Shown here one piece after another: positions 24,125-62,257 of a stretch of DNA of 64,000 nucleotides; positions within the stretch are counted from its first letter, which is position 1; each line of letters starts with the position of its first letter. Source of the stretch: Monocercomonoides exilis PA203 (taxonomy: Eukaryota; Protista; Preaxostyla). Made by a program: the position numbers and the translations under genes. The stretch is taken from the NCBI GenBank assembly GCA_001643675.2, contig LSRY02000013.1:558001-622000 (forward strand), given 5' to 3'. The notes beneath the pieces were generated by a model. That model searched no databases. It saw only the letters and a list, made by a program, of their open reading frames with translations, and was not told the origin of the DNA.

Positions 24125-24524
24125 CAGTTATCGCAAAAAATACCTGCCATCGTACAAAATACCGGACAAGATCGATTTCACAATAGCTGCAAGAGGAATG
24201 ATTCTGACAATTTTCCTCAAAATATATCTCATCAATACAAACACATTTGATATTCAAGACCTTTTTTTATAGCTTCATTTGTGCCCAGAAAAAAATTATT
24301 ATAAAAATCTGGGAGAAACTCAAAATCCTATTTCTCATAGATTTTTATAATAATTTTTTTCTGTGCACAAATGAAGCTATAAAAAAAGGTCTTGAATATC
24401 AAATGTGTTTGTATTGATGAGATATATTTTGAGGAAAATTGTCAGAATCATTCCTCTTGCAGCTATTGTGAAATCGATCTTGTCCGGTATTTTGTACGAT
24501 GGCAGGTATTTTTTGCGATAACTG
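24125..24524. mobile_element. Tc1/mariner-type fold-back MITE (400 bp, almost fully palindromic)
   Basis: Arms 24125-24318 and 24331-24524 are reverse complements with a few mismatches around a 12-bp loop. Termini are CAGT...ACTG, flanked by TA on both sides (24123-24124 and 24525-24526). Confidence 0.85.
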
Positions 24525-36850: not shown

Positions 36851-37681
36851 GTCAATTTCGAAATTGATATCGAATTAACAAAAAAGAGAGAAGAAGATAG
36901 AGTAACTATTGAAGAATGAGATTTAGCCTGATTTCTTAAAATTGAACTAATCAATGCTTTGCAAGATTCATATGTCCGAATGAATATTTCTAACTTTGCA
37001 CGTGCGAAATGTCCAATGCAAAACATCTATGTTTTCTCTTTCTGAAGCAATCGATCTCAGCCGTCGGCTTTCTCTCTCCTAAAACATCGCGAAATGTTAG
37101 CGGTTGGTCTTCAAAAACGGTCCTTAAATGATTAATGCGATATAAATGCTCAATGCAATATTTTGTCCTTATTTTTCATTCAGCTCATAAGGTTATTTCT
37201 TCTTTCTTCTTTATTATCTTTCGTAACTTCTTTTTCTTTTTCATATATCATCAATAATGATAGAATTCTATGCTCCTCAAGAGTGTATGTTCGTCTTTTG
37301 ATGTCCTTTTGAATGATTCATTTTTCATCAATGTTAGTCATAACAGTGTTCACAATTTCACAGATAATTACTAACTTTCATCAGCAGTAAAAACAATTCA
37401 ATTTCGTTTGTTTCCTTTCTCTTCGTATTATTTTAATAATGCTGTGATCCTTATCGCTCCTTTCTTAAATGCTCTCCTATTATTTCCACAAATATGATGT
37501 TCGTTCATAAAACTCGAATAATATTTTAATTATGGATAACACAAAAATACTTTTATTGCATTATAATGTAACATTCATTGTGATATATAAGTGGAAGAAG
37601 TTTGGAACAAAACACGGAATTTTTCGTAAATGGAAAAATTTTGCCCCAAATTCTGTTTATATTGATTAATATTTTTTTTCA

Positions 37682-40600
37682 ATGCTCATTTTCTTAATTC
37701 TCTTATCGCATTGTTGGTGTGGTTTTCCAACAATGAAAGCCATTCACAATTTGTGTTTTGAAGAACGAAATAATTCAAAAAGTAATTTGTTTCAGATTAA
37801 ACTGTCAAGTCGTTTTGCTGGAACTTCAATAGACATAAAACCACACACTTGTGTTTATTCCAGCACGAACTTGAAAAACTCTTCTCTTATATTATCTTTA
37901 ATCACAATTTTCAAATCGGATTCAACTTATTCACTGTTCATTGGAAGTTCATCTTGCATCGAAATCGATGACTGTCATTTTCGTTTTGCAAATTGTTCAG
38001 ATGCATCTTTTATTAAATGTGAAAGTGTTGCCATTTTGAAAAATCTGTCAATTCTTGTGCCACACAGTCATTTCATTATCTCCTCTTTAATTGAATCCAC
38101 TTACTCATCCGAAATAACACTTGAACATTCAACAATTTCTGATATAGCTTTCATCAAAGATGAACCAGTTCTTTGTAAAGGAAGCTGTTTCACTCAAATG
38201 CTTGATTATTGCATTTTGACAAATATATCCATCGATCCTGTATCATTTCTATCAAAAGCTGAAATAAATCATTCAACAAACAGTTTGCTCGACAACTGCA
38301 TGATCAAATCATATGAAAGCTGCACAAGCGATGATGTATTTCTCCTTTCCGAACATCCACTGAATTTTTTTGCTTTCAATTCTTCTTTTGAAAAGAATCA
38401 TCGCTCTTCAAATAGGTTTGGCAATACCAAAAGAGCAACAATTCATGAATCAGCAACATATTCGCAGTGTGAATGGAGAGAATGCAATGCTGCTGATGGA
38501 GGAGCTATTAGCATCAGCGACAACACAGAGGCTTCACTCTCGATTACGGATTCTTTATTCTTTAACTGTTCATCCTCAAACCATGGTGGAGCAATGTATG
38601 CATCAGCAATAAAATCAATTTCGATAAAAGGCTGTATTTTTGATTCATGTTTTGCTGGAATGATTGGTAATTATTATGGTGGAGGTATTTATTGTTTGGG
38701 CATATTGTCAAGTCTTTTCGATGATTTAAAATTTCATAATTGCCAAGCTGGTAATGACGGAGGTGGTATAAGACTGATATCAACTTTTCCAGGGGATGGT
38801 CCAGGCTTGCTGAATTCAGTGTTTTCGCGTTGTAACAGTAATTCATCACTGGATTCCACAGGAGGAGCTTTTTATCAAGGAACGTCAACAATCCAATTTT
38901 CAATAAGTAACTGTGCATTTATCGAATGCCACTCTGAAAAAAGTGCAGGAGCGGTAATGTTTCATATTGATTCAAATTGTAATTGGATTCTTGTTATGTT
39001 TTGCTTTTTTCATAAAAACACAGTGAAATATGCTGGTATTGATATTGTATTAGACAGTTCCACAATAAATAACATTCATAAATCATGTGTAACAACAACT
39101 GATTCCAATACCGTCAGTCTGAAATGGAACAGTTTGATAGATAAAAGTGATTGGCTTCCAAACACAGGAGGAAAATGCAGATTTGTCTCCTCGAAGGAGA
39201 ATCAAGCAAATGCAAAAGATACATTCAGCTGTGGATTGAATGAATCGTGTGCATGCCTCACAATCAGCCATTGTCTTTCCCAAATGATTGTGGGATTTGT
39301 GGAGGTAATAAGTGTGCTTCCAGGAACTGTTGTTGAAGTGAAAGGAGTTGGAATTAGTGATGGAGCAATAACCATTCTTGGCTCTTCATCTTCAGGATCA
39401 TTCATCAATACGAGATTCAAAGAAGGTGATGCAACTCTATTTGCAGTTGAGGGAGGCTCAGGGAGCATTCATGATTTGAGTATCATTCATGATACAGAAG
39501 ATGCTGCTGGCAGAAGTGCCAGATTATTCAAAATACAAGGGAGTGGAAAATGCAAACTGTCAAATCTGAATATCTCAATGAATTCTGCTCATAGCAAAGG
39601 CAATTACTTGCTCAATTCGCTTGTGTCACTTGACGGCGGAGAACTGAAAATGCAAGATGTGAAGTGGGATAGGATTTTCAGTGATACATGCCTGATTTCA
39701 CTTTCACAGAGTGCAGCAACTTTGTTTCTACTGAACAATTGCACTTTTATCGATATCATTCGAGTATCGGATGGATGCTCTCTTGTGAGCACCAACAGTA
39801 ATCTGCCTGATTTGACAATAAAAGCGTGCACAATTGTCAGGTGCGGAAGCGCGGAATCAGAAAAAGGTGGAGCATTAGATTTGAAAGTTGACGCTTCCGG
39901 GTGTCTGAAGGTTGAAGATGGAGAAATTCGCAATTGCTTTGCCTCGACAGTCACTGGAAGAGGTGGCGGAATGTTTTTGACTGTGACAGATGAAAGTGCG
40001 GAATATTCAATCACCACCTTGTTCACAGATAACGAAGCCAGATGGGGGAGTGACATATTTGTGGATTCTGTCAATCTGGAATGCACGGCAACAGGAAGGA
40101 AAATCTCATCTGTGACTGAATCGAATGCAACGATCAACACAATTCGAGGGTTTGATGGAGGAGATGAAAGAGTCAGAATCCCGCTGTGCGTGTATCTGAT
40201 TCCATCACCAGACGAGCTTGTTGTGAGCGACAAGGATAGCTTTGATCACTTGCACTGTGGATTTGTTGAATTTCCTTGCTTGACATTGAAGCACACATTG
40301 GAGAGACAAGAAGGAGAGAGAAAGGTGTGCGTAAATGGGATAATAAGCATGACAGATGAAATAGAATTGGAAGCTTCTAAATACGCAATCAGAGGACAAG
40401 CCGAAGGAAGTGGATGGACTGTTGGGGAAGATGCTAATGGGCTGGAACTATTATTGGTAAAGATCAAAGCAGACACTCTTTTGAGTCAGTTATTGTTTGC
40501 TTTACCCTCAGAAATGCAGCAGCATAATACTCTTATTTCTGTGCAATCCGCAGCAAAATTGACAATGGAGGAATGCTCTGCTTCAATGAAAAACACAGGC

Positions 40601-43600
40601 ACTGAACTTTCATTTGCATTCATGGAAGTGATAAGCGGAACTGTTAATATCACACAGTTTAGCGCAAATTCTATTTCATTGGCTGGCTTTCCTCTTATTT
40701 CACTGGGAGGAGCAAGCACTTTTGGAATAATTGATAGATTGGAAATGGATGAAGTGTCTTCAACAGCAAACTGCGAGCTGATAAATATTCGAAATGGTGC
40801 TTCAATGAGTGTGAGCAACTCAAAAATAACTGGAAAGAAAGTGGTACAGAGGAATCTGTTGCTTTCTTTACGATTTCTTTCGACAATCGGTGGGAAGAGT
40901 GTTTCGCTTATGAACTGTTCCATAATAGGCTTTAGCTCATTTGAAAAGAATGGAGGAGCAATCGAGTGTGTATTGGGGAGCGAATGCTCATTCGAAGTAG
41001 TTGGTGGATTGATGGAGAATGGTGGATGCATTAGTGGAAATGGAGGAGGATTGTGCATTGAGATGAAGGAAGGATCACGGTTCAGCATTGGAAACGTATC
41101 TAACGCCGAGATAAAAAACGAAGAAGATTCTGAAAGGGATGGAAACGGGGCAACAGAGCTGAAGAACTGTACTTCAATAAGGGGCGAAGAAGGAAATGGT
41201 GGTTGCGGAGGTGGTCTGTGTTTGCTGTTGGCTGGAAGTGCTTCTGACTTCATTCTGAAAGAGGTGATATTTGAAGAATGCAATGCTGATGTTGGGAAGA
41301 GTATGTTTGTGAGTTCAGAGGATCTTTCTCCTGTAATTAACAGAAATAAACTAGGATTTAATTTTAATTTGACAGATTTAACTCAGATGTGTGGATGTGA
41401 AGGAGGAAGAATAAAAGAAAACAATGCCATTCCACTGGTTTTGTATTTTTGGACAAACATGTCAAAAGAAGCACATGCTGGCGGGAGCAAAAGTGGGGAT
41501 GCCGCAGTATGCGGATTTGAAGAATATCCATGTACAACGATTGAGAAGGCACTAAAAAGGCTTGGGAAAAGTGATGAAAAGACGGTTATTGTGAGAGGAT
41601 GTGCAGAGATGAGAAGCGAGGTTGCATTGAATGGTACATCAACAGTGATATCAGGAAATGACGAAGTTGCCTCAATTGCATTTGCATCGAATTTGAAGGG
41701 TTTGGAAAGGAAGATTGTTTGGTGCAATGGCAATCTGAACATTGAGAAGATAGAAATGCAAGTGCCTCTCAGCTTTGATAGCAATGCTGATGTGCTCTTT
41801 TACTCAGATGCAGCAGATGGAAATGTGAAGATAAAAGAGTGTTGCTTTGAGGTGATGAGTTCGGAAGGCGGGTATCTTGGCTTTTCTCTGATAAGTGCTC
41901 CGAAAGGAAATGTTTTTGTTAACAGCACAAATATTTCCAATCTGAGGTCACAAAGGGAACTGATTGCCATCACAATAAATTCGCAATTAGATCTGTGGAA
42001 CACGGCTGTCAGAGATTTGGAGTTGAAAGGCAAAAGCGCCATTGTTGTTGAATGCGCAAATCAAAAGGGGATGATGGAAGAAAATGGAGACGATGAGTGG
42101 AATGTTGTGATTGTTGGGTGTTCACTGGAGAATATTGATCAGAATGGATCACAGCACCCATCGCTGATTGAGTGGCCAGGAAGTGCAGGTGTGAAGATGA
42201 AGGTAGAAAACTCAACAATGGAAGGTTGTGGATCTGATGCTTCCAGCAAAGGAGGAGGTGTGATGTTCAGTCTGAGCGATGGAGGATGGATGGAATGGGT
42301 GAATTCTTTCGTTCTGAGTTGCTTCTGCTCGCTGGCTGGGAGAGGAGGCGGCATGTATTTGAAAAGCTCTTGTGAATGCGAGATGAAGCTGCCTTTCGTG
42401 CTTTGTGGTGTGACGTTTCTTGGAAACAAAGCATTTCGCGGGAGAGATGTGTATGTGCAATGTCAAAACATAGAAAATCAGGTTGGAGAAGAGCAGTTTG
42501 TTTTGGACTTCAGATTGCCATTTGTAAAGGAATTGGCTATGTGGGGATGCCCGGAAGGCGGATTTGCAAGCGAAGAAGATTTGTTGCTGATGGTGATTGT
42601 GTATCGGAGCGAAACAATCTTTGTGTCTGGCACAGCAATGAACAGCACAAGCACAAAGCAATGTGGCGAAATTACATCTCCATGCACATCTCTGGATATC
42701 GGCGCTCGTCACGTGATCGGAAGCCAATATTCACAGATTCTTGTGGAAAAGAGCACAACGCTAGAGAACGAGCTGTTACTGAAAAGCGTATCTGTAAGGT
42801 CGTTCAGTAGCGAAATGAGCGCATCAGTAATTGTTGAAGGAGTTGTAATGGGGAATGCGAAAAGCGTGATATCTGTGAAGGAAAGCGCCACATTCGAGCG
42901 AATATTGTTCGAGTTTTGCGAGAGGATAGAAAGTGAGCATAAAAGTCTAATTGAGGCTGAAGATTGTCGATTTAGATTGTATGCTGTTGGATTTAGAAGT
43001 AAAGAGTCAGAAGAACACACAGGAAAAGCAGATGTTCCGTTCTGTCTATTGGAAGTTAAAGGTGGAATCGTAATGTTTGATAGCTGCACTGTGAGTGAGC
43101 TGTCTTTTCGGAATTGCCTGTTTCGTTTTGTGGAAGCCAATGAAATAAAGATTACCGAATTAAATGCATCAATGGTGAATGCATGGAAGAGTCTCATCGA
43201 ATGCACAGCGTGCAGAAGTGTAACTATTTCAAAGCAAGATGTGGATGAAGTGAATACTGAGCAAGGAAGTTTACTAGAGTTGGAAGACTGTGAGAGTGGA
43301 GTTGTGAATGTTTCGCTGGTGAATATCAAAAACATAACAAGTCAAGCAGAAAGAGAGAGCTGCATATGCTTCAAGTCATGCTTGTCGATGATTGAACTCT
43401 CGTATTGTTCATTTGGAGGATGCAAAAGCGATTTGCAAAGGGAAGAATTGTGTCGCTTGACCAGTGTAATGATGTTTGCATCAGTTCATGCACATTCGAC
43501 GGAGGCTCTGATACAGAAGAAGAAAGAAACGAGAGTGGAAATGAGCTGTGCAAATGGAATGGGTCGCTTTTGGATGCAAGAAGCAGCAATATTGTGATGA

Positions 43601-45537
43601 AGGATACAACAATTACGTGCTCATCAGCAGGTGCCTTATCAATATCTGGTGGGAATATGAGAATCGAGAAGGGAGAATTCAAAGAGAATAGCCCATTGAT
43701 TGCCAATTATCCATCAGCTCGGAGAAACATTATGTGCAGCGATTCTGGGACGTTGAACATACAGAGCTTGAAAGGTGGAGATGGACTGAAAGACAACACT
43801 TCTCTGTGGATTTTGAATGAAGGCTGTGAACTGCGAGGAATGGAAGCCGAAAGACCTTCTGAGCTGTTTATCCCTATGCTAGAAAGCGTGGAGGCAGAAG
43901 AAGTTGAAGGCGAGACTGTGCTGATTTTCAAAGGTCAGTTGTTGCTTCCATGCGATTTATCATTCTGGATCTCATTGAAAAAGACTGGCTCTGATTTTTC
44001 TGAGGATTATTCATTTGTGGACGAGGGATATAAAAGTGAAAACGAAGTTCATGGAAGAGTTCCATCTTTGCGCGTGCTCAATGCTGGCAGCGAGACAGAA
44101 GTTTCTGTTGGAATATATTTTGGATCTTCCAAATGCTCAACTGAGTCTTTTATTCTGAAGAACAGGAGCGAGTCTCAGACAAGCGGAGATGAAAGGATTG
44201 CTGAAAGAGGAAAAGAAGGGAAATCATCATGGGCATTGATTGTGATCATTATGGCTATTGTTCTATTGATTGTTCTGATTGCTTCAATTGTTCTGGCTGT
44301 TCGATGGAGAAAGGCAAAGAATGAAGCAGAAGATCTGAGAGAGATTGTGAATGATAACATCAGAAAGGATCCGAAGGCATTCGAGATGGTGACGATGGAG
44401 ATGTCGCCAGAAGAGCAGTGGAGGAGAGCAGAGAGGGAGGCTGAGAAGAAGGATGAAGAGAGGATGAAGAAGAGGGTATATGCGAAAAGCCTTCAGCATT
44501 CAGAATCGTCAGAGCATTTGCTGGCTGAGAGTGGATCGACTGAATACATTCTGGGAAAAGATTCAGACAAGATTCCTGAATGGGCATTGGAAAAGGTTGA
44601 GGAAGAAGATGACATATCGAGAAAGAGATCTCCTTCACCATCCACTTCATCCACTTCATCCACAGACACTTCAGACACTGAATCCACTTTTGTTCGAAGG
44701 GAGGATCTGTGCCCAACCACTTCGTCAATGTCGAATCTGGTGGATGCGATGGCCTGCTCATCACCACATGAAAAGCTGATTGTGGATCTGAGGGATTCAC
44801 TATTTATGTTGTTGCATGGAAGGAATAAGACAAAGGAGATGGCTATTGGGACTCTTCAGGAGAGGGAAGTCTCGGCTGCTCAGATCCTGTTCTGGGTGGC
44901 TAATCTCGCTCTTCACTCCTTTGATGAAATGGAAAACAAGCTTCAGTCACTTGCCAATCTGAGTCCTCACATTGTGCTGTTCTCAGAACATATGGTCATC
45001 TGCATTGTGATGCATTCTGATTTATTGTCAGATGATAGTTCAGATTCCTCATCCATCTCATCATCAACTGTTGTGACATCTGCCAGTGATGATGATGACA
45101 ATGATGACTCCCTTCCCTCATCGGCATTTGAGGATGAAGATAGCTTCAAAAAAGAGTGTCTGAGGTGGAAGGCACCAGAGCTGCTGATCAACAAGAACAT
45201 GAAGGCAACAAAGAAGTCGGTGGTGTTCTCGATCGGGATGATGCTGTGGGAGTGCCTGACACTCCACATCCCGTTCGGGGAGTACGAGGCTGTGATTGCT
45301 GGAGACAAGATTGCAAAAGGAGAGGCTTTGAGCATGTGCGGAAATGCTGCAAGCTCATTCTCTTTGGTCGTCAGCGAATGCCTCTCCTTTCAGCCTTCCA
45401 ACCGGCCTTCTCTTGTCTCCATTTTGAGAGAGTTCTTTCAGAAGTTCCCCGAGTCAGCCAAGCTCCCCACAATGACTGACGCACTCTTCACAAACCAGCA
45501 ATCTGCCATCAGCAGAAACAGCTGCTGCAGCTATTAG
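37682..45537 (+). CDS. Large Cys-rich beta-helix (GGA/FxxN, Pmp-like) type I membrane protein with C-terminal TKL-like pseudokinase, copy A, about 2618 aa; one apparent frameshift near 43438
   Basis: Intronless, with signal peptide MLIFLILLSHCWCG and four CGx(4-5)[P/A]Cx[T/S] modules. The TM segment is WALIVIIMAIVLLIVLIASIVLAV and the kinase C-lobe reads RWKAPELL..VFSIGMMLWECLT..PF..RPS. ORFs 37682-43597 and 43405-45537 join if A3 at 43437-43439 is A4, as in the mirror copy. Confidence 0.85.
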
Positions 45538-47900
45538 TGTTTGCTTCTCTCATTCCAACACAAGCATTGCCATCGTTCGCACCCCTCGTATTCATCTCTT
45601 TATCTCTCTCTTTTTTCTTTTTTGCTTTTGGTGAATAATTACAAGAAAGAAAGAAATAAGAGCTGTCCATGGCTTCTGAAGGCTTTCTTTTGTTTTGTTT
45701 TCTTTTCTTTTGTTTCTGTTGCCTCCAAACAGGGCTTGACATTTGCCAGCCAGAGTCTGACGTTTGTGTTTTTCTGTGTTGTTTTTGCACTTCGCTCGAA
45801 AGTGATTTTTCACAACCACTTCCGCTTTATTGCTTGTAAATCCACTTCAAAATGGAAAGACATCGAGGCAAATGATTTCTAAAATCCTTTGATCTTCCTC
45901 TGTGAATTGCCTTCTTCTCTGAAATGAATGTTCCCTGAAAAATATATCCCAACATCCTTGCTTTGACTCAGCCAAGAAATCAAAATCAAAAAAAATATGT
46001 GATAACGTTGGCACCTGCGCAAAAACCCAGAATACATCTTTCTCAGCCTTGGCAAAATTTCTAGAGCCATGCCAAGATGACTTTTTTTTATTCATTCAAA
46101 ACATGAAATATAACAATATAAAAATTGTTGAGATAAAAACAACAGCAAACGATGCGAAAGGAAATGGCACTCAAGGAAATGAGAGGCTTCAAATAAGTTC
46201 CATCAAAACGAAGAGAGAAACACTCTGGAATTTATTTTTTTTATTGAGAGTTCATTGCCTCCTTCTTTCAAACGATTCAAGACAAAAGGCAAGAAGCTGA
46301 GTCATCTTGCGCATTCTTGCAGCGATTGCACCCAGAAACTCGCATTCCCATTCCATCCAAAAATAACTGCATTTCCCAATGAAAAATTCCCACCTCCATT
46401 AGCAAGGCGCAGATTCGCAGAGTATCCCCTTCCACTTTGTCATCCTTTTTGCGTTTCGGTGTTGATCACCAGCTTGGCACTTTCAGCCGAAGCATAAATA
46501 TCTCTTCCCTTTGTAAATAGAAGCGCGCTTTCGCTGCCGATGACACAAACAAAAATTATGCACTCAAGCTTCAGCTTTCGATTAACTTGCGATGCTCCAG
46601 GGGAAAAATAAAATTAAAAAAAATGTAATTGTGAACCAATGGAACATTTGCTGGCCATTTCTTGAACGCTCCAACTTGATCGGAATATCGCTTCTCTGCT
46701 TCCATTTGCAGCATCCCTTGTTTCCAGTTTGAAGAATCTGTTATCGCCACAGCTCCGTGCCCTCCAATCAACACACGCACCTGCTAGTTGGATGCATGCC
46801 CGCCAACAAAAGCACTGCTTTTCCTTTTCCTCATATCCTTTTCCTTCCAGAATCTGTCTTTTAGGTGTAGCAAAGATACAAATAGCGAAGCAAGCAAAAT
46901 CATTTGTTGGCAAGCATATCAGGTGGCCAATGTCAATTTCAGTTCTTGTTCGTTCAGCCATTTTCTTTGCTTTTCGCTGGCAAACATCCCTCGCATTTTC
47001 GCTTTCCACAAAATGTGACATGGCGCCTGCACATTTTGGAGGAAAAAAATAAAAAATAAAATAAAAAGGAAAAGTGCCAATAAAAGCAAACTGAGCTGAA
47101 GCCTCTTCAGCTGGCCATTTCCCAAACGATTTTTCTGCCAATATGGTTCTCATGGAATTTCTCAACAAAAAACTCTTAAAAAAGAAAAAAGCTGCTCTTT
47201 TCAACAAAAACATCCTTTCCATTCATAAAAATTCCAAACCTCTTTTTTTTTTCTTGCGCCTACAACATATTCAATATTTTTATTATCGGATCCTCAAGCA
47301 GAAGCAAAGGAGAGACTCTTTTTCCATTTTTGGGGGAAAAAATAAGACATCGAAAAGAAAAGGCATTTCACGCTCGATATTGGACAATTCCAAAAGACTG
47401 CATGCCTTGAGATATGTTTTATTGCTTTATTGCAAGCAATGTCTTTCTGTGCTGGCACCAGGCATTCCCTCGTTTTTTGAGTCATCGAAAAGAATCCTCC
47501 CAAACATGAGGGGGAAAAAAATTAAAAGAACAATTTCATCTGCCATGAAAATCACTTTTGCTCAATGGCTTCTCGAAACGGTCTCTCATCGCAGAACAGC
47601 TACAGTCCGGCACACACAAATTGATAGGAAAACAAAAATCATTTTCCAAATGATACGCTCTCCCCACAAATTGCAAACTTTGCTCAATGCTTAAATTCTA
47701 TCAAATCCAGCAACATAACATGTTCATCCGTTTTTGTGCTGCCTAAGAGCAAATATACGCTTTTTGCTCTCAATTTTTGATTTTGAAGATATTATTATTC
47801 GTTGATCATTTCGCTTCAAAATCTTTCAAACAAAGAAAATATTTTATTATAAAATAGCACATAGTCCTATAAATCAATTTATTACAGGTTTGTTATGATA
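39148..47900 (+). repeat. Left arm of 8753-bp inverted repeat
   Basis: Reverse complement of 49098-57850. The ORF track is mirrored, and end coordinates sum to 96998 at both boundaries. Confidence 0.97.
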
Positions 47901-48246
47901 CAAAATGTAAACATTCAAACACCTTCAAAAATTCGAAAAACTGGAAAAGAAAATAAACAAATGTTCATGTGAAACAAACAAGATTGTCAGTTCATCTTAT
48001 TTAAATAATAATTTATTTTCCAAAACTCAAATGCAATTTCAAAACAAAATCCTTTGGAATTTGAAAACAAAAAAACAAAAAAGTTCAACATTGAAAAGCA
48101 TTCAAACATTCATACATACAAAAATCGTCTTGAAAGCACTCGAAACGCAAATTAAATTCCAAAAGAAACTAAAAGAAACTAAAATAAATAAAATAAATAA
48201 AAAATAAAAAATAAAAAATACAATATTAATTTAGAAATCCTCTATT

Positions 48247-48867
48247 TCACATCAGAAAACATTTGAATGATGATTTCTCGTTTTTGGCAGACGGCTCCTC
48301 AGTAACATCCTCTTCTGCTTCAATGTCTTTGGATTCGTGGTAGCTCAAGCCCAGCCGTACCAGCTCCGTGAATGCCTCATCCACATTCTCTCCTGTTTCT
48401 GCTGACGTCTCAAAATACCCACAAAATCCCTCTTTTTTGCACCAGTCTTCCACCTCAAATCGGTTGACAGCCCGATGCTCCCTCTGATCGCTTCCGTTTC
48501 CAATAAGGATAAGCGGACAATCACTCGAAGCATTCACCATAATGCTGTCTATCTGTTTTTTCATCTCTTTCAAGTTATCAAAAGAATCATGCGATGACAG
48601 TCTGAAGACAAGTGCACAAGCATCTGATCCTCGAAAATATGCTTTCTGAATTGACTTATACTCGTGATAAAAAGGAACATTCCAAAAATATGCCTGAACT
48701 TTTTTGTCATCAACTGAAACATTTTTTGATTTGAAATCAGAATTTATTTAATGCCTGTAATTGTAAAAATCTTCATCAACGTATCTTTCGGTCAGTAAAG
48801 AGATGCCTACTCCATATTCACCAACGATGCACAATTTCACCCTCAACTCCTCTTTTGTTTCACTCAT
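48247..48867 (-). pseudogene. Rab-like small GTPase pseudogene (Rab7/Rab32-like appearance), intronless, 207 codons
   Basis: Reads MSETKEELRVKLCIVGEYGVGISLLTERYVDEDFYNYRH*INSDFKSK...WNVPFY...AYFRGSDACALVF...LIGNGSD...YFETSAETGENVDEAF...CFLM. There is an in-frame TAA at 48750-48748, and G1, G3 and G4 are all degenerate. Confidence 0.8.
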
Positions 48868-49097
48868 CAAAAAGAAATATTTTTATTATGTTCAGATCTC
48901 TTTCATCATTTTTTGAAGATTATCACTAATAATATTGAAAGAACTTCAATTCAATTGTAGCTTGAAGATAAAAATGACAAATATTAATTATTTTTAAAGA
49001 AAAACTCAAAAATTCATTGCTTGAATAATCAAAAATTTTTATATTGATTTTTACAAAAAAAAATTAATTTCTTTCTCTTTAAAAGGTTTTTATTTTA

Positions 49098-52000
49098 TAT
49101 CATAACAAACCTGTAATAAATTGATTTATAGGACTATGTGCTATTTTATAATAAAATATTTTCTTTGTTTGAAAGATTTTGAAGCGAAATGATCAACGAA
49201 TAATAATATCTTCAAAATCAAAAATTGAGAGCAAAAAGCGTATATTTGCTCTTAGGCAGCACAAAAACGGATGAACATGTTATGTTGCTGGATTTGATAG
49301 AATTTAAGCATTGAGCAAAGTTTGCAATTTGTGGGGAGAGCGTATCATTTGGAAAATGATTTTTGTTTTCCTATCAATTTGTGTGTGCCGGACTGTAGCT
49401 GTTCTGCGATGAGAGACCGTTTCGAGAAGCCATTGAGCAAAAGTGATTTTCATGGCAGATGAAATTGTTCTTTTAATTTTTTTCCCCCTCATGTTTGGGA
49501 GGATTCTTTTCGATGACTCAAAAAACGAGGGAATGCCTGGTGCCAGCACAGAAAGACATTGCTTGCAATAAAGCAATAAAACATATCTCAAGGCATGCAG
49601 TCTTTTGGAATTGTCCAATATCGAGCGTGAAATGCCTTTTCTTTTCGATGTCTTATTTTTTCCCCCAAAAATGGAAAAAGAGTCTCTCCTTTGCTTCTGC
49701 TTGAGGATCCGATAATAAAAATATTGAATATGTTGTAGGCGCAAGAAAAAAAAAAGAGGTTTGGAATTTTTATGAATGGAAAGGATGTTTTTGTTGAAAA
49801 GAGCAGCTTTTTTCTTTTTTAAGAGTTTTTTGTTGAGAAATTCCATGAGAACCATATTGGCAGAAAAATCGTTTGGGAAATGGCCAGCTGAAGAGGCTTC
49901 AGCTCAGTTTGCTTTTATTGGCACTTTTCCTTTTTATTTTATTTTTTATTTTTTTCCTCCAAAATGTGCAGGCGCCATGTCACATTTTGTGGAAAGCGAA
50001 AATGCGAGGGATGTTTGCCAGCGAAAAGCAAAGAAAATGGCTGAACGAACAAGAACTGAAATTGACATTGGCCACCTGATATGCTTGCCAACAAATGATT
50101 TTGCTTGCTTCGCTATTTGTATCTTTGCTACACCTAAAAGACAGATTCTGGAAGGAAAAGGATATGAGGAAAAGGAAAAGCAGTGCTTTTGTTGGCGGGC
50201 ATGCATCCAACTAGCAGGTGCGTGTGTTGATTGGAGGGCACGGAGCTGTGGCGATAACAGATTCTTCAAACTGGAAACAAGGGATGCTGCAAATGGAAGC
50301 AGAGAAGCGATATTCCGATCAAGTTGGAGCGTTCAAGAAATGGCCAGCAAATGTTCCATTGGTTCACAATTACATTTTTTTTAATTTTATTTTTCCCCTG
50401 GAGCATCGCAAGTTAATCGAAAGCTGAAGCTTGAGTGCATAATTTTTGTTTGTGTCATCGGCAGCGAAAGCGCGCTTCTATTTACAAAGGGAAGAGATAT
50501 TTATGCTTCGGCTGAAAGTGCCAAGCTGGTGATCAACACCGAAACGCAAAAAGGATGACAAAGTGGAAGGGGATACTCTGCGAATCTGCGCCTTGCTAAT
50601 GGAGGTGGGAATTTTTCATTGGGAAATGCAGTTATTTTTGGATGGAATGGGAATGCGAGTTTCTGGGTGCAATCGCTGCAAGAATGCGCAAGATGACTCA
50701 GCTTCTTGCCTTTTGTCTTGAATCGTTTGAAAGAAGGAGGCAATGAACTCTCAATAAAAAATAAATTCCAGAGTGTTTCTCTCTTCGTTTTGATGGAACT
50801 TATTTGAAGCCTCTCATTTCCTTGAGTGCCATTTCCTTTCGCATCGTTTGCTGTTGTTTTTATCTCAACAATTTTTATATTGTTATATTTCATGTTTTGA
50901 ATGAATAAAAAAAAGTCATCTTGGCATGGCTCTAGAAATTTTGCCAAGGCTGAGAAAGATGTATTCTGGGTTTTTGCGCAGGTGCCAACGTTATCACATA
51001 TTTTTTTTGATTTTGATTTCTTGGCTGAGTCAAAGCAAGGATGTTGGGATATATTTTTCAGGGAACATTCATTTCAGAGAAGAAGGCAATTCACAGAGGA
51101 AGATCAAAGGATTTTAGAAATCATTTGCCTCGATGTCTTTCCATTTTGAAGTGGATTTACAAGCAATAAAGCGGAAGTGGTTGTGAAAAATCACTTTCGA
51201 GCGAAGTGCAAAAACAACACAGAAAAACACAAACGTCAGACTCTGGCTGGCAAATGTCAAGCCCTGTTTGGAGGCAACAGAAACAAAAGAAAAGAAAACA
51301 AAACAAAAGAAAGCCTTCAGAAGCCATGGACAGCTCTTATTTCTTTCTTTCTTGTAATTATTCACCAAAAGCAAAAAAGAAAAAAGAGAGAGATAAAGAG
51401 ATGAATACGAGGGGTGCGAACGATGGCAATGCTTGTGTTGGAATGAGAGAAGCAAACACTAATAGCTGCAGCAGCTGTTTCTGCTGATGGCAGATTGCTG
51501 GTTTGTGAAGAGTGCGTCAGTCATTGTGGGGAGCTTGGCTGACTCGGGGAACTTCTGAAAGAACTCTCTCAAAATGGAGACAAGAGAAGGCCGGTTGGAA
51601 GGCTGAAAGGAGAGGCATTCGCTGACGACCAAAGAGAATGAGCTTGCAGCATTTCCGCACATGCTCAAAGCCTCTCCTTTTGCAATCTTGTCTCCAGCAA
51701 TCACAGCCTCGTACTCCCCGAACGGGATGTGGAGTGTCAGGCACTCCCACAGCATCATCCCGATCGAGAACACCACCGACTTCTTTGTTGCCTTCATGTT
51801 CTTGTTGATCAGCAGCTCTGGTGCCTTCCACCTCAGACACTCTTTTTTGAAGCTATCTTCATCCTCAAATGCCGATGAGGGAAGGGAGTCATCATTGTCA
51901 TCATCATCACTGGCAGATGTCACAACAGTTGATGATGAGATGGATGAGGAATCTGAACTATCATCTGACAATAAATCAGAATGCATCACAATGCAGATGA

Positions 52001-55000
52001 CCATATGTTCTGAGAACAGCACAATGTGAGGACTCAGATTGGCAAGTGACTGAAGCTTGTTTTCCATTTCATCAAAGGAGTGAAGAGCGAGATTAGCCAC
52101 CCAGAACAGGATCTGAGCAGCCGAGACTTCCCTCTCCTGAAGAGTCCCAATAGCCATCTCCTTTGTCTTATTCCTTCCATGCAACAACATAAATAGTGAA
52201 TCCCTCAGATCCACAATCAGCTTTTCATGTGGTGATGAGCAGGCCATCGCATCCACCAGATTCGACATTGACGAAGTGGTTGGGCACAGATCCTCCCTTC
52301 GAACAAAAGTGGATTCAGTGTCTGAAGTGTCTGTGGATGAAGTGGATGAAGTGGATGGTGAAGGAGATCTCTTTCTCGATATGTCATCTTCTTCCTCAAC
52401 CTTTTCCAATGCCCATTCAGGAATCTTGTCTGAATCTTTTCCCAGAATGTATTCAGTCGATCCACTCTCAGCCAGCAAATGCTCTGACGATTCTGAATGC
52501 TGAAGGCTTTTCGCATATACCCTCTTCTTCATCCTCTCTTCATCCTTCTTCTCAGCCTCCCTCTCTGCTCTCCTCCACTGCTCTTCTGGCGACATCTCCA
52601 TCGTCACCATCTCGAATGCCTTCGGATCCTTTCTGATGTTATCATTCACAATCTCTCTCAGATCTTCTGCTTCATTCTTTGCCTTTCTCCATCGAACAGC
52701 CAGAACAATTGAAGCAATCAGAACAATCAATAGAACAATAGCCATAATGATCACAATCAATGCCCATGATGATTTCCCTTCTTTTCCTCTTTCAGCAATC
52801 CTTTCATCTCCGCTTGTCTGAGACTCGCTCCTGTTCTTCAGAATAAAAGACTCAGTTGAGCATTTGGAAGATCCAAAATATATTCCAACAGAAACTTCTG
52901 TCTCGCTGCCAGCATTGAGCACGCGCAAAGATGGAACTCTTCCATGAACTTCGTTTTCACTTTTATATCCCTCGTCCACAAATGAATAATCCTCAGAAAA
53001 ATCAGAGCCAGTCTTTTTCAATGAGATCCAGAATGATAAATCGCATGGAAGCAACAACTGACCTTTGAAAATCAGCACAGTCTCGCCTTCAACTTCTTCT
53101 GCCTCCACGCTTTCTAGCATAGGGATAAACAGCTCAGAAGGTCTTTCGGCTTCCATTCCTCGCAGTTCACAGCCTTCATTCAAAATCCACAGAGAAGTGT
53201 TGTCTTTCAGTCCATCTCCACCTTTCAAGCTCTGTATGTTCAACGTCCCAGAATCGCTGCACATAATGTTTCTCCGAGCTGATGGATAATTGGCAATCAA
53301 TGGGCTATTCTCTTTGAATTCTCCCTTCTCGATTCTCATATTCCCACCAGATATTGATAAGGCACCTGCTGATGAGCACGTAATTGTTGTATCCTTCATC
53401 ACAATATTGCTGCTTCTTGCATCCAAAAGCGACCCATTCCATTTGCACAGCTCATTTCCACTCTCGTTTCTTTCTTCTTCTGTATCAGAGCCTCCGTCGA
53501 ATGTGCATGAACTGATGCAAACATCATTACACTGGTCAAGCGACACAATTCTTCCCTTTTGCAAATCGCTTTTGCATCCTCCAAATGAACAATACGAGAG
53601 TTCAATCATCGACAAGCATGACTTGAAGCATATGCAGCTCTCTCTTTCTGCTTGACTTGTTATGTTTTTGATATTCACCAGCGAAACATTCACAACTCCA
53701 CTCTCACAGTCTTCCAACTCTAGTAAACTTCCTTGCTCAGTATTCACTTCATCCACATCTTGCTTTGAAATAGTTACACTTCTGCACGCTGTGCATTCGA
53801 TGAGACTCTTCCATGCATTCACCATTGATGCATTTAATTCGGTAATCTTTATTTCATTGGCTTCCACAAAACGAAACAGGCAATTCCGAAAAGACAGCTC
53901 ACTCACAGTGCAGCTATCAAACATTACGATTCCACCTTTAACTTCCAATAGACAGAACGGAACATCTGCTTTTCCTGTGTGTTCTTCTGACTCTTTACTT
54001 CTAAATCCAACAGCATACAATCTAAATCGACAATCTTCAGCCTCAATTAGACTTTTATGCTCACTTTCTATCCTCTCGCAAAACTCGAACAATATTCGCT
54101 CGAATGTGGCGCTTTCCTTCACAGATATCACGCTTTTCGCATTCCCCATTACAACTCCTTCAACAATTACTGATGCGCTCATTTCGCTACTGAACGACCT
54201 TACAGATACGCTTTTCAGTAACAGCTCGTTCTCTAGCGTTGTGCTCTTTTCCACAAGAATCTGTGAATATTGGCTTCCGATCACGTGACGAGCGCCGATA
54301 TCCAGAGATGTGCATGGAGATGTAATTTCGCCACATTGCTTTGTGCTTGTGCTGTTCATTGCTGTGCCAGACACAAAGATTGTTTCGCTCCGATACACAA
54401 TCACCATCAGCAACAAATCTTCTTCGCTTGCAAATCCGCCTTCCGGGCATCCCCACATAGCCAATTCCTTTACAAATGGCAATCTGAAGTCCAAAACAAA
54501 CTGCTCTTCTCCAACCTGATTTTCTATGTTTTGACATTGCACATACACATCTCTCCCGCGAAATGCTTTGTTTCCAAGAAACGTCACACCACAAAGCACG
54601 AAAGGCAGCTTCATCTCGCATTCACAAGAGCTTTTCAAATACATGCCGCCTCCTCTCCCAGCCAGCGAGCAGAAGCAACTCAGAACGAAAGAATTCACCC
54701 ATTCCATCCATCCTCCATCGCTCAGACTGAACATCACACCTCCTCCTTTGCTGGAAGCATCAGATCCACAACCTTCCATTGTTGAGTTTTCTACCTTCAT
54801 CTTCACACCTGCACTTCCTGGCCACTCAATCAGCGATGGGTGCTGTGATCCATTCTGATCAATATTCTCCAGTGAACACCCAACAATCACAACATTCCAC
54901 TCATCGTCTCCATTTTCTTCCATCATCCCCTTTTGATTTGCGCATTCAACAACAATGGCGCTTTTGCCTTTCAACTCCAAATCTCTGACAGCCGTGTTCC

Positions 55001-57850
55001 ACAGATCTAATTGCGAATTTATTGTGATGGCAATCAGTTCCCTTTGTGACCTCAGATTGGAAATATTTGTGCTGTTAACAAAAACATTTCCTTTCGGAGC
55101 ACTTATCAGAGAAAAGCCAAGATACCCGCCTTCCGAACTCATCACCTCAAAGCAACACTCTTTTATCTTCACATTTCCATCTGCTGCATCTGAGTAAAAG
55201 AGCACATCAGCATTGCTATCAAAGCTGAGAGGCACTTGCATTTCTATCTTCTCAATGTTCAGATTGCCATTGCACCAAACAATCTTCCTTTCCAAACCCT
55301 TCAAATTCGATGCAAATGCAATTGAGGCAACTTCGTCATTTCCTGATATCACTGTTGATGTACCATTCAATGCAACCTCGCTTCTCATCTCTGCACATCC
55401 TCTCACAATAACCGTCTTTTCATCACTTTTCCCAAGCCTTTTTAGTGCCTTCTCAATCGTTGTACATGGATATTCTTCAAATCCGCATACTGCGGCATCC
55501 CCACTTTTGCTCCCGCCAGCATGTGCTTCTTTTGACATGTTTGTCCAAAAATACAAAACCAGTGGAATGGCATTGTTTTCTTTTATTCTTCCTCCTTCAC
55601 ATCCACACATCTGAGTTAAATCTGTCAAATTAAAATTAAATCCTAGTTTATTTCTGTTAATTACAGGAGAAAGATCCTCTGAACTCACAAACATACTCTT
55701 CCCAACATCAGCATTGCATTCTTCAAATATCACCTCTTTCAGAATGAAGTCAGAAGCACTTCCAGCCAACAGCAAACACAGACCACCTCCGCAACCACCA
55801 TTTCCTTCTTCGCCCCTTATTGAAGTACAGTTCTTCAGCTCTGTTGCCCCGTTTCCATCCCTTTCAGAATCTTCTTCGTTTTTTATCTCGGCGTTAGATA
55901 CGTTTCCAATGCTGAACCGTGATCCTTCCTTCATCTCAATGCACAATCCTCCTCCATTTCCACTAATGCATCCACCATTCTCCATCAATCCACCAACTAC
56001 TTCGAATGAGCATTCGCTCCCCAATACACACTCGATTGCTCCTCCATTCTTTTCAAATGAGCTAAAGCCTATTATGGAACAGTTCATAAGCGAAACACTC
56101 TTCCCACCGATTGTCGAAAGAAATCGTAAAGAAAGCAACAGATTCCTCTGTACCACTTTTCTTTCCAGTTATTTTTGAGTTGCTCACACTCATTGAAGCA
56201 CCATTTCGAATATTTATCAGCTCGCAGTTTGCTGTTGAAGACACTTCATCCATTTCCAATCTATCAATTATTCCAAAAGTGCTTGCTCCTCCCAGTGAAA
56301 TAAGAGGAAAGCCAGCCAATGAAATAGAATTTGCGCTAAACTGTGTGATATTAACAGTTCCGCTTATCACTTCCATGAATGCAAATGAAAGTTCAGTGCC
56401 TGTGTTTTTCATTGAAGCAGAGCATTCCTCCATTGTCAATTTTGCTGCGGATTGCACAGAAATAAGAGTATTATGCTGCTGCATTTCTGAGGGTAAAGCA
56501 AACAATAACTGACTCAAAAGAGTGTCTGCTTTGATCTTTACCAATAATAGTTCCAGCCCATTAGCATCTTCCCCAACAGTCCATCCACTTCCTTCGGCTT
56601 GTCCTCTGATTGCGTATTTAGAAGCTTCCAATTCTATTTCATCTGTCATGCTTATTATCCCATTTACGCACACCTTTCTCTCTCCTTCTTGTCTCTCCAA
56701 TGTGTGCTTCAATGTCAAGCAAGGAAATTCAACAAATCCACAGTGCAAGTGATCAAAGCTATCCTTGTCGCTCACAACAAGCTCGTCTGGTGATGGAATC
56801 AGATACACGCACAGCGGGATTCTGACTCTTTCATCTCCTCCATCAAACCCTCGAATTGTGTTGATCGTTGCATTCGATTCAGTCACAGATGAGATTTTCC
56901 TTCCTGTTGCCGTGCATTCCAGATTGACAGAATCCACAAATATGTCACTCCCCCATCTGGCTTCGTTATCTGTGAACAAGGTGGTGATTGAATATTCCGC
57001 ACTTTCATCTGTCACAGTCAAAAACATTCCGCCACCTCTTCCAGTGACTGTCGAGGCAAAGCAATTGCGAATTTCTCCATCTTCAACCTTCAGACACCCG
57101 GAAGCGTCAACTTTCAAATCTAATGCTCCACCTTTTTCTGATTCCGCGCTTCCGCACCTGACAATTGTGCACGCTTTTATTGTCAAATCAGGCAGATTAC
57201 TGTTGGTGCTCACAAGAGAGCATCCATCCGATACTCGAATGATATCGATAAAAGTGCAATTGTTCAGTAGAAACAAAGTTGCTGCACTCTGTGAAAGTGA
57301 AATCAGGCATGTATCACTGAAAATCCTATCCCACTTCACATCTTGCATTTTCAGTTCTCCGCCGTCAAGTGACACAAGCGAATTGAGCAAGTAATTGCCT
57401 TTGCTATGAGCAGAATTCATTGAGATATTCAGATTTGACAGTTTGCATTTTCCACTCCCTTGTATTTTGAATAATCTGGCACTTCTGCCAGCAGCATCTT
57501 CTGTATCATGAATGATACTCAAATCATGAATGCTCCCTGAGCCTCCCTCAACTGCAAATAGAGTTGCATCACCTTCTTTGAATCTCGTATTGATGAATGA
57601 TCCTGAAGATGAAGAGCCAAGAATGGTTATTGCTCCATCACTAATTCCAACTCCTTTCACTTCAACAACAGTTCCTGGAAGCACACTTATTACCTCCACA
57701 AATCCCACAATCATTTGGGAAAGACAATGGCTGATTGTGAGGCATGCACACGATTCATTCAATCCACAGCTGAATGTATCTTTTGCATTTGCTTGATTCT
57801 CCTTCGAGGAGACAAATCTGCATTTTCCTCCTGTGTTTGGAAGCCAATCA
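49098..57850 (-). repeat. Right arm of 8753-bp inverted repeat
   Basis: Reverse complement of 39148-47900. The only differences I found are three homopolymer length changes. Confidence 0.97.
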
Positions 57851-59283
57851 TTTTTGTCACCATTTGCATAATATCTTATTCCATCTGTTCTTGTTGAAAA
57901 GCAACAAACAATTTGTGAATGTGTTGAGTTATCATCAATGAATATGTCATTTCCATATGGAGCGGTGTTGTTATGAAAAAAGCAAAACCACACAAGATTT
58001 CCGTTATATCCATTTGTTTTAATGCTCAATCCGCCACCTCTCCATTCTGAATAACAACATTGAAAGAAACAGTTATGAGCAATGATTTTATCTACTGTTT
58101 CCCAAACAATAAATCCGGCTCCATCGGAATCTCTTGGATCATGTGTGCTGCAGTTCAGAAATGAGCAATCCATTATGCAGTCTTTTGTTTTTAACGTTTT
58201 TGAGTTCCAAATTCCAAATCCACCCCCATCGTTTCCTGACCATCCATGTTTAAAGCAACTGTTTTCAACGAAAACTTGGACCGACACTCCATTTGTCTCT
58301 ATTCCGGCGCCGCCATAACCAAGTGACGATACACAATAGCAATAATCAAATGTGGAATGTTTTACTGTGCATTCGGCAATTCTCAAAGCATAAATTCCAC
58401 CCCCTCTTGTTGAAGTTGCATTGCATTTTATAAACGATGAGTTTTCAACCGAAAGAGTTGCATCCAAATTATCATGCACATACAATGCTCCGCCACAAGA
58501 GGCAGAACATCCATCCCATTCTGAATTCTGGAACTGCTGAGATTGTGTTGTGTCCAAATGCTCATTATTTCCTTTTTTCCAGTCATTTCTTGTATTGTTG
58601 TTGAATGTGCAATTGTCACAGAAAAAGCAAGCTGAACCCAATGTTCCGCACACAACCCCTCCTTCCAGCACATCCGTGGAACCTTCTGTCAAACAATCTT
58701 GTATTGTGCTTTTTATTAGCATTGTCTTTGTGTTGCATCTGCAGTTTTCTTTGCTCAATTTTCTTGTGATATTTGCAAACTTGGAGTTTTTGATGCTTTC
58801 TGAGCATCCTTCACCACTTCTCAAAAAGTTCCCACATCCACAAAACACACAATCTCTGCATTCGCAATTTTCAACCTGAATTCGAGACATTTGCTTGTCA
58901 ATTCTCACAAAACTTTTCATTGCCGTCCCTCTTGTGAAACTCATTTCAGACACGTTCATAAAAATGCATATTCCTTCAGAATGCATTAAACAAGATTTTT
59001 GTATTGGACTTCTAACAAATCTGCAAGTGCATGTTCGTGCTGACGATTGATTATCAACAACCAAGGCGCTTTTCTCGCTCACATGATGAAATATCATTTG
59101 ATGGAATTCCACTGAAGAGTTGAATAAGAAGCATGTTATTTCAGTAACGCTTTCTGTGTCTCTGATTTTGTTTCCTTCGAAAGAGCCTCTATTAATCACA
59201 TTATCCTCTGCTTTGCAATCATAGTTTTCTTCTTTGCATTTAAAGGATATCAGTGCACAAAGGGAAAAAATGAGAAATCTCAT
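51459..59283 (-). CDS. Beta-helix receptor pseudokinase, copy B, about 2607 aa; one apparent frameshift near 56157-56160
   Basis: ORFs 56062-59283 and 51459-56156 join if one extra T is removed relative to copy A. Signal peptide is MRFLIFSLCALISF. The sequence matches copy A from DWLPNTGGK onward and differs over the first ~478 aa. Confidence 0.85.
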
Positions 59284-59712
59284 CTCTTGTTCAATAAAAA
59301 AAAATTGATCTTATTCCTTTATTCCGCTTTCTTTTCGAAATATTTCGTTATATCTTCTTTTGGCTGTGCTAACAGTGATAACAGTAAATGAATTGAGAAT
59401 TTCACATTTCCACTTGGAAAAGTTGTTCTCTTTTCCTTGGTACACTCAATATCATTGATTTTGCTTCAATGAAAATAGTGATTGTCAAAGTTGAGAGTTT
59501 AGCTTGTTTCGAAAAATCTTAAAATGTTTTTGAAATATTGCATTCAACTCTTTTAATGTTTCATTTTCACTATTCTTTGAATTCGCCTTTTCAAAATTTT
59601 GAAAATTTTTATTTATTCAATATTCTTATAAAAAAGCAGAAAATAAAAGAATATCATTCAACTGAAAGAATCAATAAGCATTCGAAGAAATCTTTTAAAT
59701 ATATGCATGTAT

Positions 59713-59977
59713 GGGGTAAAATATTTTGCTTCAAGCATTTTCATTGTAAAATTATTCACTTTTCATTGACTTTTTCATGTCGATAACACAATAAAAATAG
59801 GTCTATTTTTTGAAATTCATGAAATGTTGGAAAAATTAATGTTTTGATTTCAACGATGCCTGTTTGAGGATATAAAAATCAAATTTATTTCTAAATCTGA
59901 GAAAGCTAAACTAAGTTATGAACGAAGTAATTTCAACGCCTTGTGCAAAAAAAGCTTGAAAGTCCGAATTTTCTCCC
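59713..59977 (+). mobile_element. Diverged second copy of the GGGG...CCCC element at 24662-24928
   Basis: Collinear shared blocks: gcattttcattg, cttttcattgacttttt, aacacaataaa, atgttttgatttcaacgatg, aaatctgagaaa, aagttatga and aaaagcttgaaagtccg. Confidence 0.85.
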
Positions 59978-62257
59978 AATTGAACAGTGAGGTACAGGAT
60001 AATCAGAATTTTTTCTATTTCCTTCCTCCCAAATAGATGAATCAACTTCATTTCCAACTGTATCAAATAATGTGTTCGTAAAAAGCACAAAATCTTAATC
60101 CGAAATTTTCCATTCGTTTTATTCATTGAATAAGAATCTTCTTCCTCTTCTTCTGGTTCAAAAGTTTCTTCTTTTCGAGCTTTGTATTCTTTTTCAGTAT
60201 TTTTCATGTATTTTTAAATGAAAAATGAGAATTTTTTTGTGCAACAAAATGAAATTATTTGAAAGAGTGAAAACAAATGCACACTATTTTTCATCATTAA
60301 TGAAACAGAATTAACATTTGATAATCAGTCAACAATACTTTAATGCTATTTGCACATGAAATGATGATTCGATTAAAATTTTTAAAAATGACATTTTGTG
60401 AAAAAATTAAAATCAAAAGAATAAAAACGAGAAAAATAATCGGATTTATTGACAGTCTTATGAGCGTCAACGATTTCACTCAGACAAGAAAAAATTTTCC
60501 GTTCAGCAGACAGAACATCCAGTTTATGAAAAATAATTTTTTTATTATTATGAGTGATTGCAAAAAATGATTGAGAGGCCGTACGAAAAAAAGTTTTCCA
60601 TTTTATTCGAGAAATCCAAAAATCCTAATTTTCATTATTGAAAAACTGATTTTCAAAGTCATTATTGATTTTTTTCACAACCATTTGATAGCATCCAAAC
60701 ATATTTATTAAAATTTCCACTTCCGCACTCAACTTTGATAATTTCACAAATTCAATCAAAATCCAACATTGTCACATCAAAAATCATCACGTGTCAAAAT
60801 ATATAAATGAGTAATAATTTTTGAAAAGTCGCGAATGTTTAATATCTGAGTAAAAAAAAAATTCACCTCTTTTTATCTCCTTTATGCAATATATTTATCA
60901 AACTTTATCATTTTGCCAATTTGAATATTGAAACAAATATGATATGAGAATAAGTGCATAGTGGAGAAATATGATGGATTCACTACGAAAAACAACAAAA
61001 AAAGATTCAATTTTTAGAAATACAGTACGAAAACATTAGCGAATTTTCAAAAAGAGAAATTGATAATCTTCAATTGTTTCATTATAAGTGCTTTATTCAA
61101 CAAAAATCGATTTGTTGTTCAAAAATATCACAATATCGATAAATCATAAATAAGTTAAAGAATGTTCAAATTACATTGAATCATGGTCAAAAAACATTTA
61201 TGTTTTGAAAAATATCTGTTTGCAAGGAATTCTCTGAAATGAAAAAATTGACGGAAAATTAAAATAATATTATATGTGTGTTTGTATGTATGTATGTATA
61301 TTATTCTGTGAAAAAGTTTCACATATATTTAATCGGATATTGTTTTTAAGAGTCGTTTCAATCTTGTTGCAATAATGTCCGATTTCTGTGATCCTGAATA
61401 ATACGCCAATTAAGTTTTTTCATCCATTTAACATCAAAGCACATGTTCTCGGACATACACATAAATAATTGATAAACAGTGTAATTTGCACATCGACAAA
61501 GAAAGCATTAAAGGAATAAAAGAAAGACAATTTTCATTTAAGTATGATTCGTAGGCGATATGACCAGAAAGATTTTATTTTGAAAAAGATATTCCAGATT
61601 TAAAGAAGTTTTTTCTTTCATCTTTCTTCAAAAAAATAATCATTATCATCGTATTTATTGAGGAAATAAATTAAAGAAATGCATCCAGAAAAAAGATATT
61701 CTTATTTTAATATCTCATCGTAATCATGAAGCAGTAGCTAAGGGTTTTAAAAAAAAAAAAAAATAAAAAAAATAAAATAAAAAAAAAACTTTCAATTTAT
61801 TGGTTTCAACATTTCTTCAAATATGAATATAAAGTTTGAAATATTCATTACAATTTTTGTGACAACAATTATCCTGAATTACATATTTTTTGAAAATCTT
61901 TTGAGAAAATTTTAGGAAAAAATCAAAAGAAAAACAAAAATTATATTCAAAATTATTATAACAACTTCTTTTCACTAAATTGAGGATCAATTTTGTACCA
62001 AGAATGTCCAAAATGAAAATTTGAAGTTAAATTCTATCATTCATAAATTGAAAAATGTTCTGAACTTTTTCCAATTTTTTTCAATTGAAATATATTGTCA
62101 CACCAAATAAAATACAGAAATAATTAAAAAGATGAAAAAAACTTTGAATGCGATAAATGGAACAAAATTCATAAAGGATTATAATTTGTCTTATGGTGAA
62201 ACTTCGATCACGTTAAACCATTGTTTAATAAAGAAACAAATCTTTTCAATATCAAAT

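Follow-up and report, generated by a model that had tools for sequence, protein, structure and literature searches.

In trypanosomes, gene conversion anchored in the conserved 3′ end of variant surface glycoprotein (VSG) genes can produce mosaics. In Plasmodium falciparum, exon 1 sequences of diverged var paralogues (63% average identity) recombine in frame with their architecture kept (PMC4270465). Arm-to-arm gene conversion is known from palindromes with near-identical arms, where it extends over multiple kilobases with a mean tract of 2 kb and a maximum above 9 kb (PMC3723533). Entamoeba histolytica, a gut protist, encodes ~90 transmembrane kinases with highly variable ectodomains (PMC7762796). 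For Monocercomonoides exilis, a gut flagellate that lacks mitochondria, the passages on kinases in two published papers present these as the largest gene family, with 332 genes (PMC6759080), overlapping unclassified repeats (PMC8767320). The genes analyzed here come from the same organism and family, and MONOS_15653 is identical to the segment that they share. Against the published count, one exact tail motif occurs 780 times in the assembly, which puts the family at 780 genes or more; neither a β-helix ectodomain, nor loss of catalytic motifs, palindromic pairs or mosaicism is described in the kinase passages of PMC6759080 and PMC8767320.

The window, a stretch of 64,000 nucleotides from M. 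exilis PA203, contains two such receptor genes (Table 1), and the assembly searched for relatives comprised 82.3 Mb in 101 contigs. Gene 1 encodes a signal peptide, a tandem β-helix ectodomain, one transmembrane (TM) segment and a pseudokinase tail. The best homologues of the pair were annotated M. exilis MONOS proteins with tyrosine-kinase-like PF07714 matches, which assigns both genes to the TKL/PTK receptor family of this organism. Within the tail, PF07714 matches the C-lobe only (profile positions 163–257 of 258), and HRD-like or DFG motifs were found in 0 of 121 tails, so that the set of Gly-rich loop, HRD and DFG that defines an active kinase is not present. The term ‘pseudokinase’ used in the initial annotation is, therefore, correct.

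No Pfam match was obtained for the ectodomain. An alignment-based AlphaFold2 model of the second half of the head and module 1 (pLDDT 91.8) contained two right-handed β-helices, residues 1–240 and 241–505, which superpose separately on lyase/tailspike folds (VIA Z ~17 and r.m.s.d. 2.7 Å each, for residues 1–240 and 242–500) and are, thus, predicted to be pectin lyase-like. The tryptophan of a DWLP motif is residue 237 of this model and lies where the two separately superposing helices meet, so that DWLP marks a true border between two predicted β-helix domains. Ectodomain modules 1–4 open with CG motifs near 39230, 40256, 41510 and 42662. Across the family, tails are 85–90% identical at the amino acid level in most alignment windows of a sample chosen on the tail, and ectodomains are ~30% identical; module number differs among 70 full-length family proteins, the models of which contain false introns. 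Judged by fold alone, the most likely role of these proteins is that of surface adhesins, or of glycan or microbe sensors signaling through a scaffold pseudokinase. Their nearest architectural parallel is the large receptor-kinase family of the gut protist Entamoeba, with the difference that its ectodomains are CXXC-rich and lectin-like while those of M. exilis are β-helices on tails lacking HRD and DFG.

Table 1 Features of the window (positions count from its first nucleotide; arm features are given for the left arm).
Feature	Position	Strand	Remarks
Adaptin N-terminal domain protein	7404–10316		Ordinary neighbor
P-type ATPase	26645–29827		Ordinary neighbor
Gene 1	37682–45537	+	~2,618 aa, type I membrane protein
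Head 1	37682–39147	+	Signal peptide and distal β-helix, 489 aa
Left palindrome arm	39148–47900	+	8.75 kb, 99.9% identical to right arm
Patch after DWLP	39140–39350	+	~200 nt; linker and CG..C..T motif opening module 1
Ectodomain modules 1–4	39351–44136	+	Gene 1/C1 lineage, ~4.8 kb; mirrored at ~52860–57647
Tail	44137–45537	+	Juxtamembrane stalk from TESFILKN motif, TM (~44227–44304), pseudokinase
Downstream block within arm	45538–47900	+	2.4 kb, noncoding; mirrored in right arm
Rab/Ras-family GTPase gene in spacer	48247–48867	−	1.2-kb spacer; in-frame stop at codon 40
Right palindrome arm	49098–57850	−	Mirror of left arm
Gene 2	51459–59283	−	~2,607-aa paralogue of gene 1
Head 2	57851–59283	−	478 aa
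Divergent Hsp70-like ORF	62515–64000		Ordinary neighbor

Self-BLAST of the window returned one large inverted match, 39140–47915 against 57858–49083, with 99.886% identity over 8,778 columns. Going outward, the first mismatch lies at 39147/57851 and perfect identity begins at 39148/57850. The alignment, thus, places the break inside DK(S/N)DWLP, where the initial annotation had seen it, and leaves exactly 2,130 shared codons up to the stop codon, for which ~2,130 had been given; the heads, described there as paralogous but diverged, are 27% identical and have the motifs named in that annotation in common. Arm identity passes the stop codons by ~2.4 kb and reaches ~47900/49098, so the inverted repeat is a palindrome arm rather than a coding ‘body’. 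The locus is an 18.7-kb palindrome with two 8.75-kb arms, in which the genes lie tail to tail on either side of a 1.2-kb spacer with a probable Rab/Ras-family GTPase pseudogene. The arms differ in three homopolymer-length indels only (40837/56160, 43436/53560 and 46235/50762), and the lack of any substitution in 8.7 kb indicates that the latest exchange event was recent. The downstream 2.4-kb block recurs at 88–92% identity beside ~11 other family tails, exclusively on contig 7, and by this distribution is a chromosome-specific cassette; its two ORFs (45538–47900) had no match in a Pfam search. Palindromes of mammalian sex chromosomes likewise combine inverted arms of >99.9% identity with a short spacer and multi-kilobase tracts (PMC3723533). 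Unlike these, the M. exilis arms measure 3–9 kb and their outer end lies within a gene, where a longer tract yields a chimeric protein.

Two of the indels each shift the frame of one gene in the assembly, at 43436 in gene 1 and at 56157–56160 in gene 2. The extra base at 56157–56160 is missing from read contigs of four runs, position 53560 has no variant in contigs of three DNA runs, and MONOS_15653, a protein annotated in a different set, is continuous across both sites with 100% identity over 2,084 aa. Real frameshifts were rejected on this evidence; both are probable assembly errors, and the genes are, therefore, probably intact at the lengths given in Table 1. For local comparisons only, residues were numbered from the open frames joined across the two arms. 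In three DNA runs, the word depth of contigs over the arm was ~2× that of head 2 and long difference-free contigs covered the arm, which fits two real arm copies. Among the contigs listed, none bridges the junction at 57850 or its 39148 counterpart, which adjoins a multi-copy patch, and a protein search with head plus patch returned no independent model spanning either junction (targets 0.55–1.75× the query length). At low depth, contigs of one RNA set from a synthetic metagenome overlap parts of the arm. Inside head 2, contigs covering 58389–58651 and 58841–59056 have double depth with a few variant letters, which suggests short near-identical patches common to another paralogue, perhaps C7:500k.

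Further repeats flank the palindrome. A dispersed repeat with a length of at least 4.5 kb covers 33200–37683, extends further left and stops 0–30 nt upstream of the gene 1 start codon. It is 98% identical to C28:362893–367403 and 90–97% identical to copies on contigs C36, C58 and C40, and could represent insertion of a mobile element into the promoter of gene 1; a terminal inverted repeat was looked for in it and not found. The ORF at 31335–32747 had no Pfam match. Nested inverted repeats occupy 24123–25667, with a 196-nt hairpin at 24123–24526 and further arms at 24525–24662/25530–25667 and 24928–25108/25355–25535 (97–98% identity). This structure is possibly a foldback element, and part of it (24661–24933) recurs at 80% identity upstream of gene 2 (59712–59982).

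The initial annotation had read the pair as variable heads set on a constant stalk at the DWLP motif, and had proposed that this could be a receptor-diversification or antigenic-variation system. The shared body exists in two copies only, with two contig-1 genes as its next relatives (77%), and its segments have different affinities. Head 1 represents a rare ‘C1’ lineage with two close relatives only, C1:1099065 and C1:1298026 (~75–79% nucleotide identity). Head 2 belongs to a large ‘B’ subfamily, and its closest relative, C7:500202–502229, is 88% identical in nucleotides; in the search table, the match of this C7:500k gene to gene 2 runs through the head and DWLP and ~200 nt on, to 57648. The corresponding patch after DWLP shares 82–89% identity with over 30 B/X-type genes, best with C7:500k, and 64% with gene 1’s own relatives. 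Informative sites are of the X type, that of the head 2 subfamily, from DWLP to ~aa 546 and of the C1 type from ~aa 560. In the tail, the first 560 nt from 44137 are 89–95% identical to contig-7 neighbors and 81–85% identical to other family members. By these affinities, the ‘constant body’ is a mosaic of three lineages: a gene 2 patch, a gene 1 ectodomain and a contig-7 tail. We infer that gene 1 acquired the patch from gene 2 by copying, and that gene 2 acquired modules 1–4 from gene 1, out to ~57648. Transfer in both directions implies two events or more, or else a single heteroduplex that was repaired in patches.

Building separate trees for the parts before and after DWLP, as the initial annotation had advised, confirmed different histories: gene 2 grouped with the B heads in the head tree (support 100/100) and with gene 1 and its two C1 relatives in the trees of modules 1 and 2 (SH-aLRT 100). 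DWLP itself was rejected as the place where gene 2 changes lineage, since the informative sites and C7:500k put that change ~200 nt downstream. Head 1, compared with its contig-1 relatives, is 89–94% identical in nucleotides over aa 150–300 and 61–76% over aa 300–480, and a further exchange point inside the head is possible.

The DNA examined covered four palindromes of contig 7 and 30 head regions; other palindromes lie on contigs C32, C22, C1 and C6. Besides the pair studied here, the four comprised the tail-to-tail pairs C7:653k, C7:711k and C7:292k, which have the same inner limit and Rab spacer and arms that are ~100% identical over ~3.0, 4.5 and at least 5.2 kb, respectively. Between the four pairs, identity is 88–93% (7–12% different), so that the two arms of a pair resemble each other far more than the palindromes resemble one another, a pattern characteristic of arm-to-arm conversion. 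The identity tracts of C7:653k and C7:711k stop within the tail, with older homology extending to TESFILKN. Seven tight tail-to-tail pairs were found among the first 100 of the 780 tails, and in five of them both arms contain one and the same 26-mer. A cassette in which the Rab spacer is flanked on each side by a 2.4-kb block and, further out, a tail has, thus, been multiplied on contig 7 as a tail-to-tail palindrome, with the arms of each copy kept ~100% identical while the copies drifted apart. One of the sister palindromes (C7:709916–723109) is perfect to its center and contains two Rab copies, both intact and identical to each other; of the remaining sisters, C7:653k has an intact Rab and C7:292k one with a stop at a different place.

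The proposal that recombination or gene conversion acted at a conserved border between domains held up, with the DWLP border, the incongruent trees and other family members in its favor. In a 30-locus set picked by a query spanning DWLP, which over-represents genes with the X patch, pairs of common history have heads of 81–91% and module 1 of 83–97% nucleotide identity; L022/L026, L030/L024 and L034/L040 have heads of 50–51% and module 1 of 81–91%. In the family protein P0065, a B head is followed by the other type of linker. Exchange at or near DWLP, thus, recurs, with at least three cases, but is not the family’s main join. In the DWLP-selected set, tree compatibility falls again at aa 820–835, where L040 switches subfamily, and does so as deeply as at DWLP (0.40 versus 0.41). 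Pairwise triplet scans of 120 tail-selected paralogous proteins detected 49 partner switches in 40 of them. Of these, 9 fell on the tail border and 20 in the 175 aa before it, 3 on the head junction and 5 on other junctions between modules; the remainder lay within modules (10) or heads (2). These counts are rough, as the statistic favors conserved regions, events are partly non-independent and the models contain false introns. Switches within 220 aa of the membrane stalk made up 29 of the 49, and the three at the head junction correspond to 6.3 per 10,000 testable positions (p = 0.18). Mapping of breakpoints, also suggested in the initial annotation, consequently supports recurrent exchange at DWLP and no significant enrichment there; the motif itself varies across the family.

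A silent cassette pool was sought among 150 head matches and not found: 124 of them lie in open frames of at least 2,000 aa and 8 in frames of at most 702 aa. The search for orphan heads proposed earlier, hence, yielded mainly full-length frames, and a pool of orphan heads was rejected on these 150 matches. Nor did we find a single constant acceptor with a fixed join, given the mosaic body and the 3 of 49 switches at the head junction. With neither cassette pool nor fixed acceptor, we do not class the pair as an antigenic-variation system, and M. exilis differs from trypanosome VSG in that no expression site, silent head-cassette pool or single constant body was found. Further points against a dedicated system as proposed initially are the 2.4 kb of noncoding identity, the different ends of the sister palindromes and the lack of significant enrichment at DWLP in the tail-selected sample. 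Pooled dN/dS values for six close pairs, which are averages across sites, were 0.29–0.38 for heads and 0.25–0.33 for the body. At this level the heads are under purifying selection and vary no more than the bodies between close paralogues, and hypervariable heads were rejected for these pairs.

We regard it as likely that the pair results from gene conversion, both arm-to-arm and ectopic, in which reading frame and domain order are preserved. Arm-to-arm conversion would hold the arms of each palindrome alike, with tracts that are anchored in the identical center, reach outward over variable distances and resolve at a short conserved motif common to unlike ectodomains, often a module border. 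The ancestry of the segments records at least two steps in opposite directions, for which we suggest an order: the gene 1 ectodomain would have replaced that of gene 2 out to ~39350/57648, and the 200-nt linker patch of gene 2 would then have replaced that of gene 1 out to DWLP, the place where the tract of this pair would have halted. Ectopic exchange among unlinked family members, visible in the triplet switches, adds to the patchwork, and the process yields receptors that stay in frame and combine domains anew, possibly only at an evolutionary rate. Copying of 4.8 kb across unlike ectodomains exceeds most known tracts and counts against conversion. By analogy, the locus would work most like var exon 1 recombination combined with palindrome conversion.

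How far the likeness to var extends bears on a more dynamic explanation, high-rate mitotic reshuffling within the host with module borders preferred and new combinations selected. Like var, the M. exilis family has a variable ectodomain, a conserved intracellular tail and in-frame, architecture-preserving chimeras of diverged paralogues. Recurrent exchanges that preserve domain order, arms recent enough to be free of substitutions and a copy number of 780 or more, combined with conserved tails and divergent ectodomains, would all suit such reshuffling. Selection is not diversifying on average (dN/dS ~0.3), and ancestry blocks match paralogues at only 75–92%, which makes most exchange events old; we consider this explanation unlikely. 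For var, mitotic rate, immune exposure and exclusive expression have been measured (PMC4270465). The M. exilis family, known here from sequence, is more than tenfold larger and ends in a pseudokinase. Switching of variable heads onto one constant body at DWLP in the style of an expression site could draw on the motif being a true domain border with at least three independent exchanges at or near it. The two-copy body, the scarcity of heads in short frames, the variability of the motif and the unremarkable number of switches at the junction leave this programmed form hardly credible.

Two simpler explanations concern the pair itself. Recent inverted duplication by template switching would, for one pair, yield the same end state as conversion, and a single event of this kind with microhomology at DWLP and no ongoing conversion would account for the sharp arm ends on both sides and the short homology at the outer end. 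It would not account for a shared segment with donors from both directions, nor for three sister cassettes that are ~10% diverged, each with its own 100% identical arms and the same inner limit, and we judge it very unlikely. An assembly artifact, either a chimeric junction or polishing that homogenized two similar copies, seems more improbable still. Among the contigs listed none crosses 57850, and a section of the assembly paper warns that multi-copy regions polish poorly (PMC8767320); set against this are the difference-free contigs and doubled depth of the arm in three DNA runs, the colinearity of head 2 and patch with the independent sibling gene C7:500k and the recurrence of the palindromic layout at other loci.

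Conversion between arms and among paralogues, our preferred reading, leaves room for a bolder possibility, which we hold to be unlikely, that the palindromes are a built-in shuffling device in which tail-primed conversion, resolved at module borders, makes new ectodomains within the host. If true, a commensal oxymonad would possess a var-like surface repertoire of ~800 receptor-pseudokinases. The locus is a clean, recent example of a large protist receptor family gaining domain combinations, with a tract that ends on a domain border and donors in both directions. While the mechanism of conversion is familiar, the architecture and mosaic evolution of these β-helix receptor-pseudokinases, which occupy several Mb of the genome and appear in the kinase passages of the published papers only as ‘tyrosine kinases’, are worth describing.
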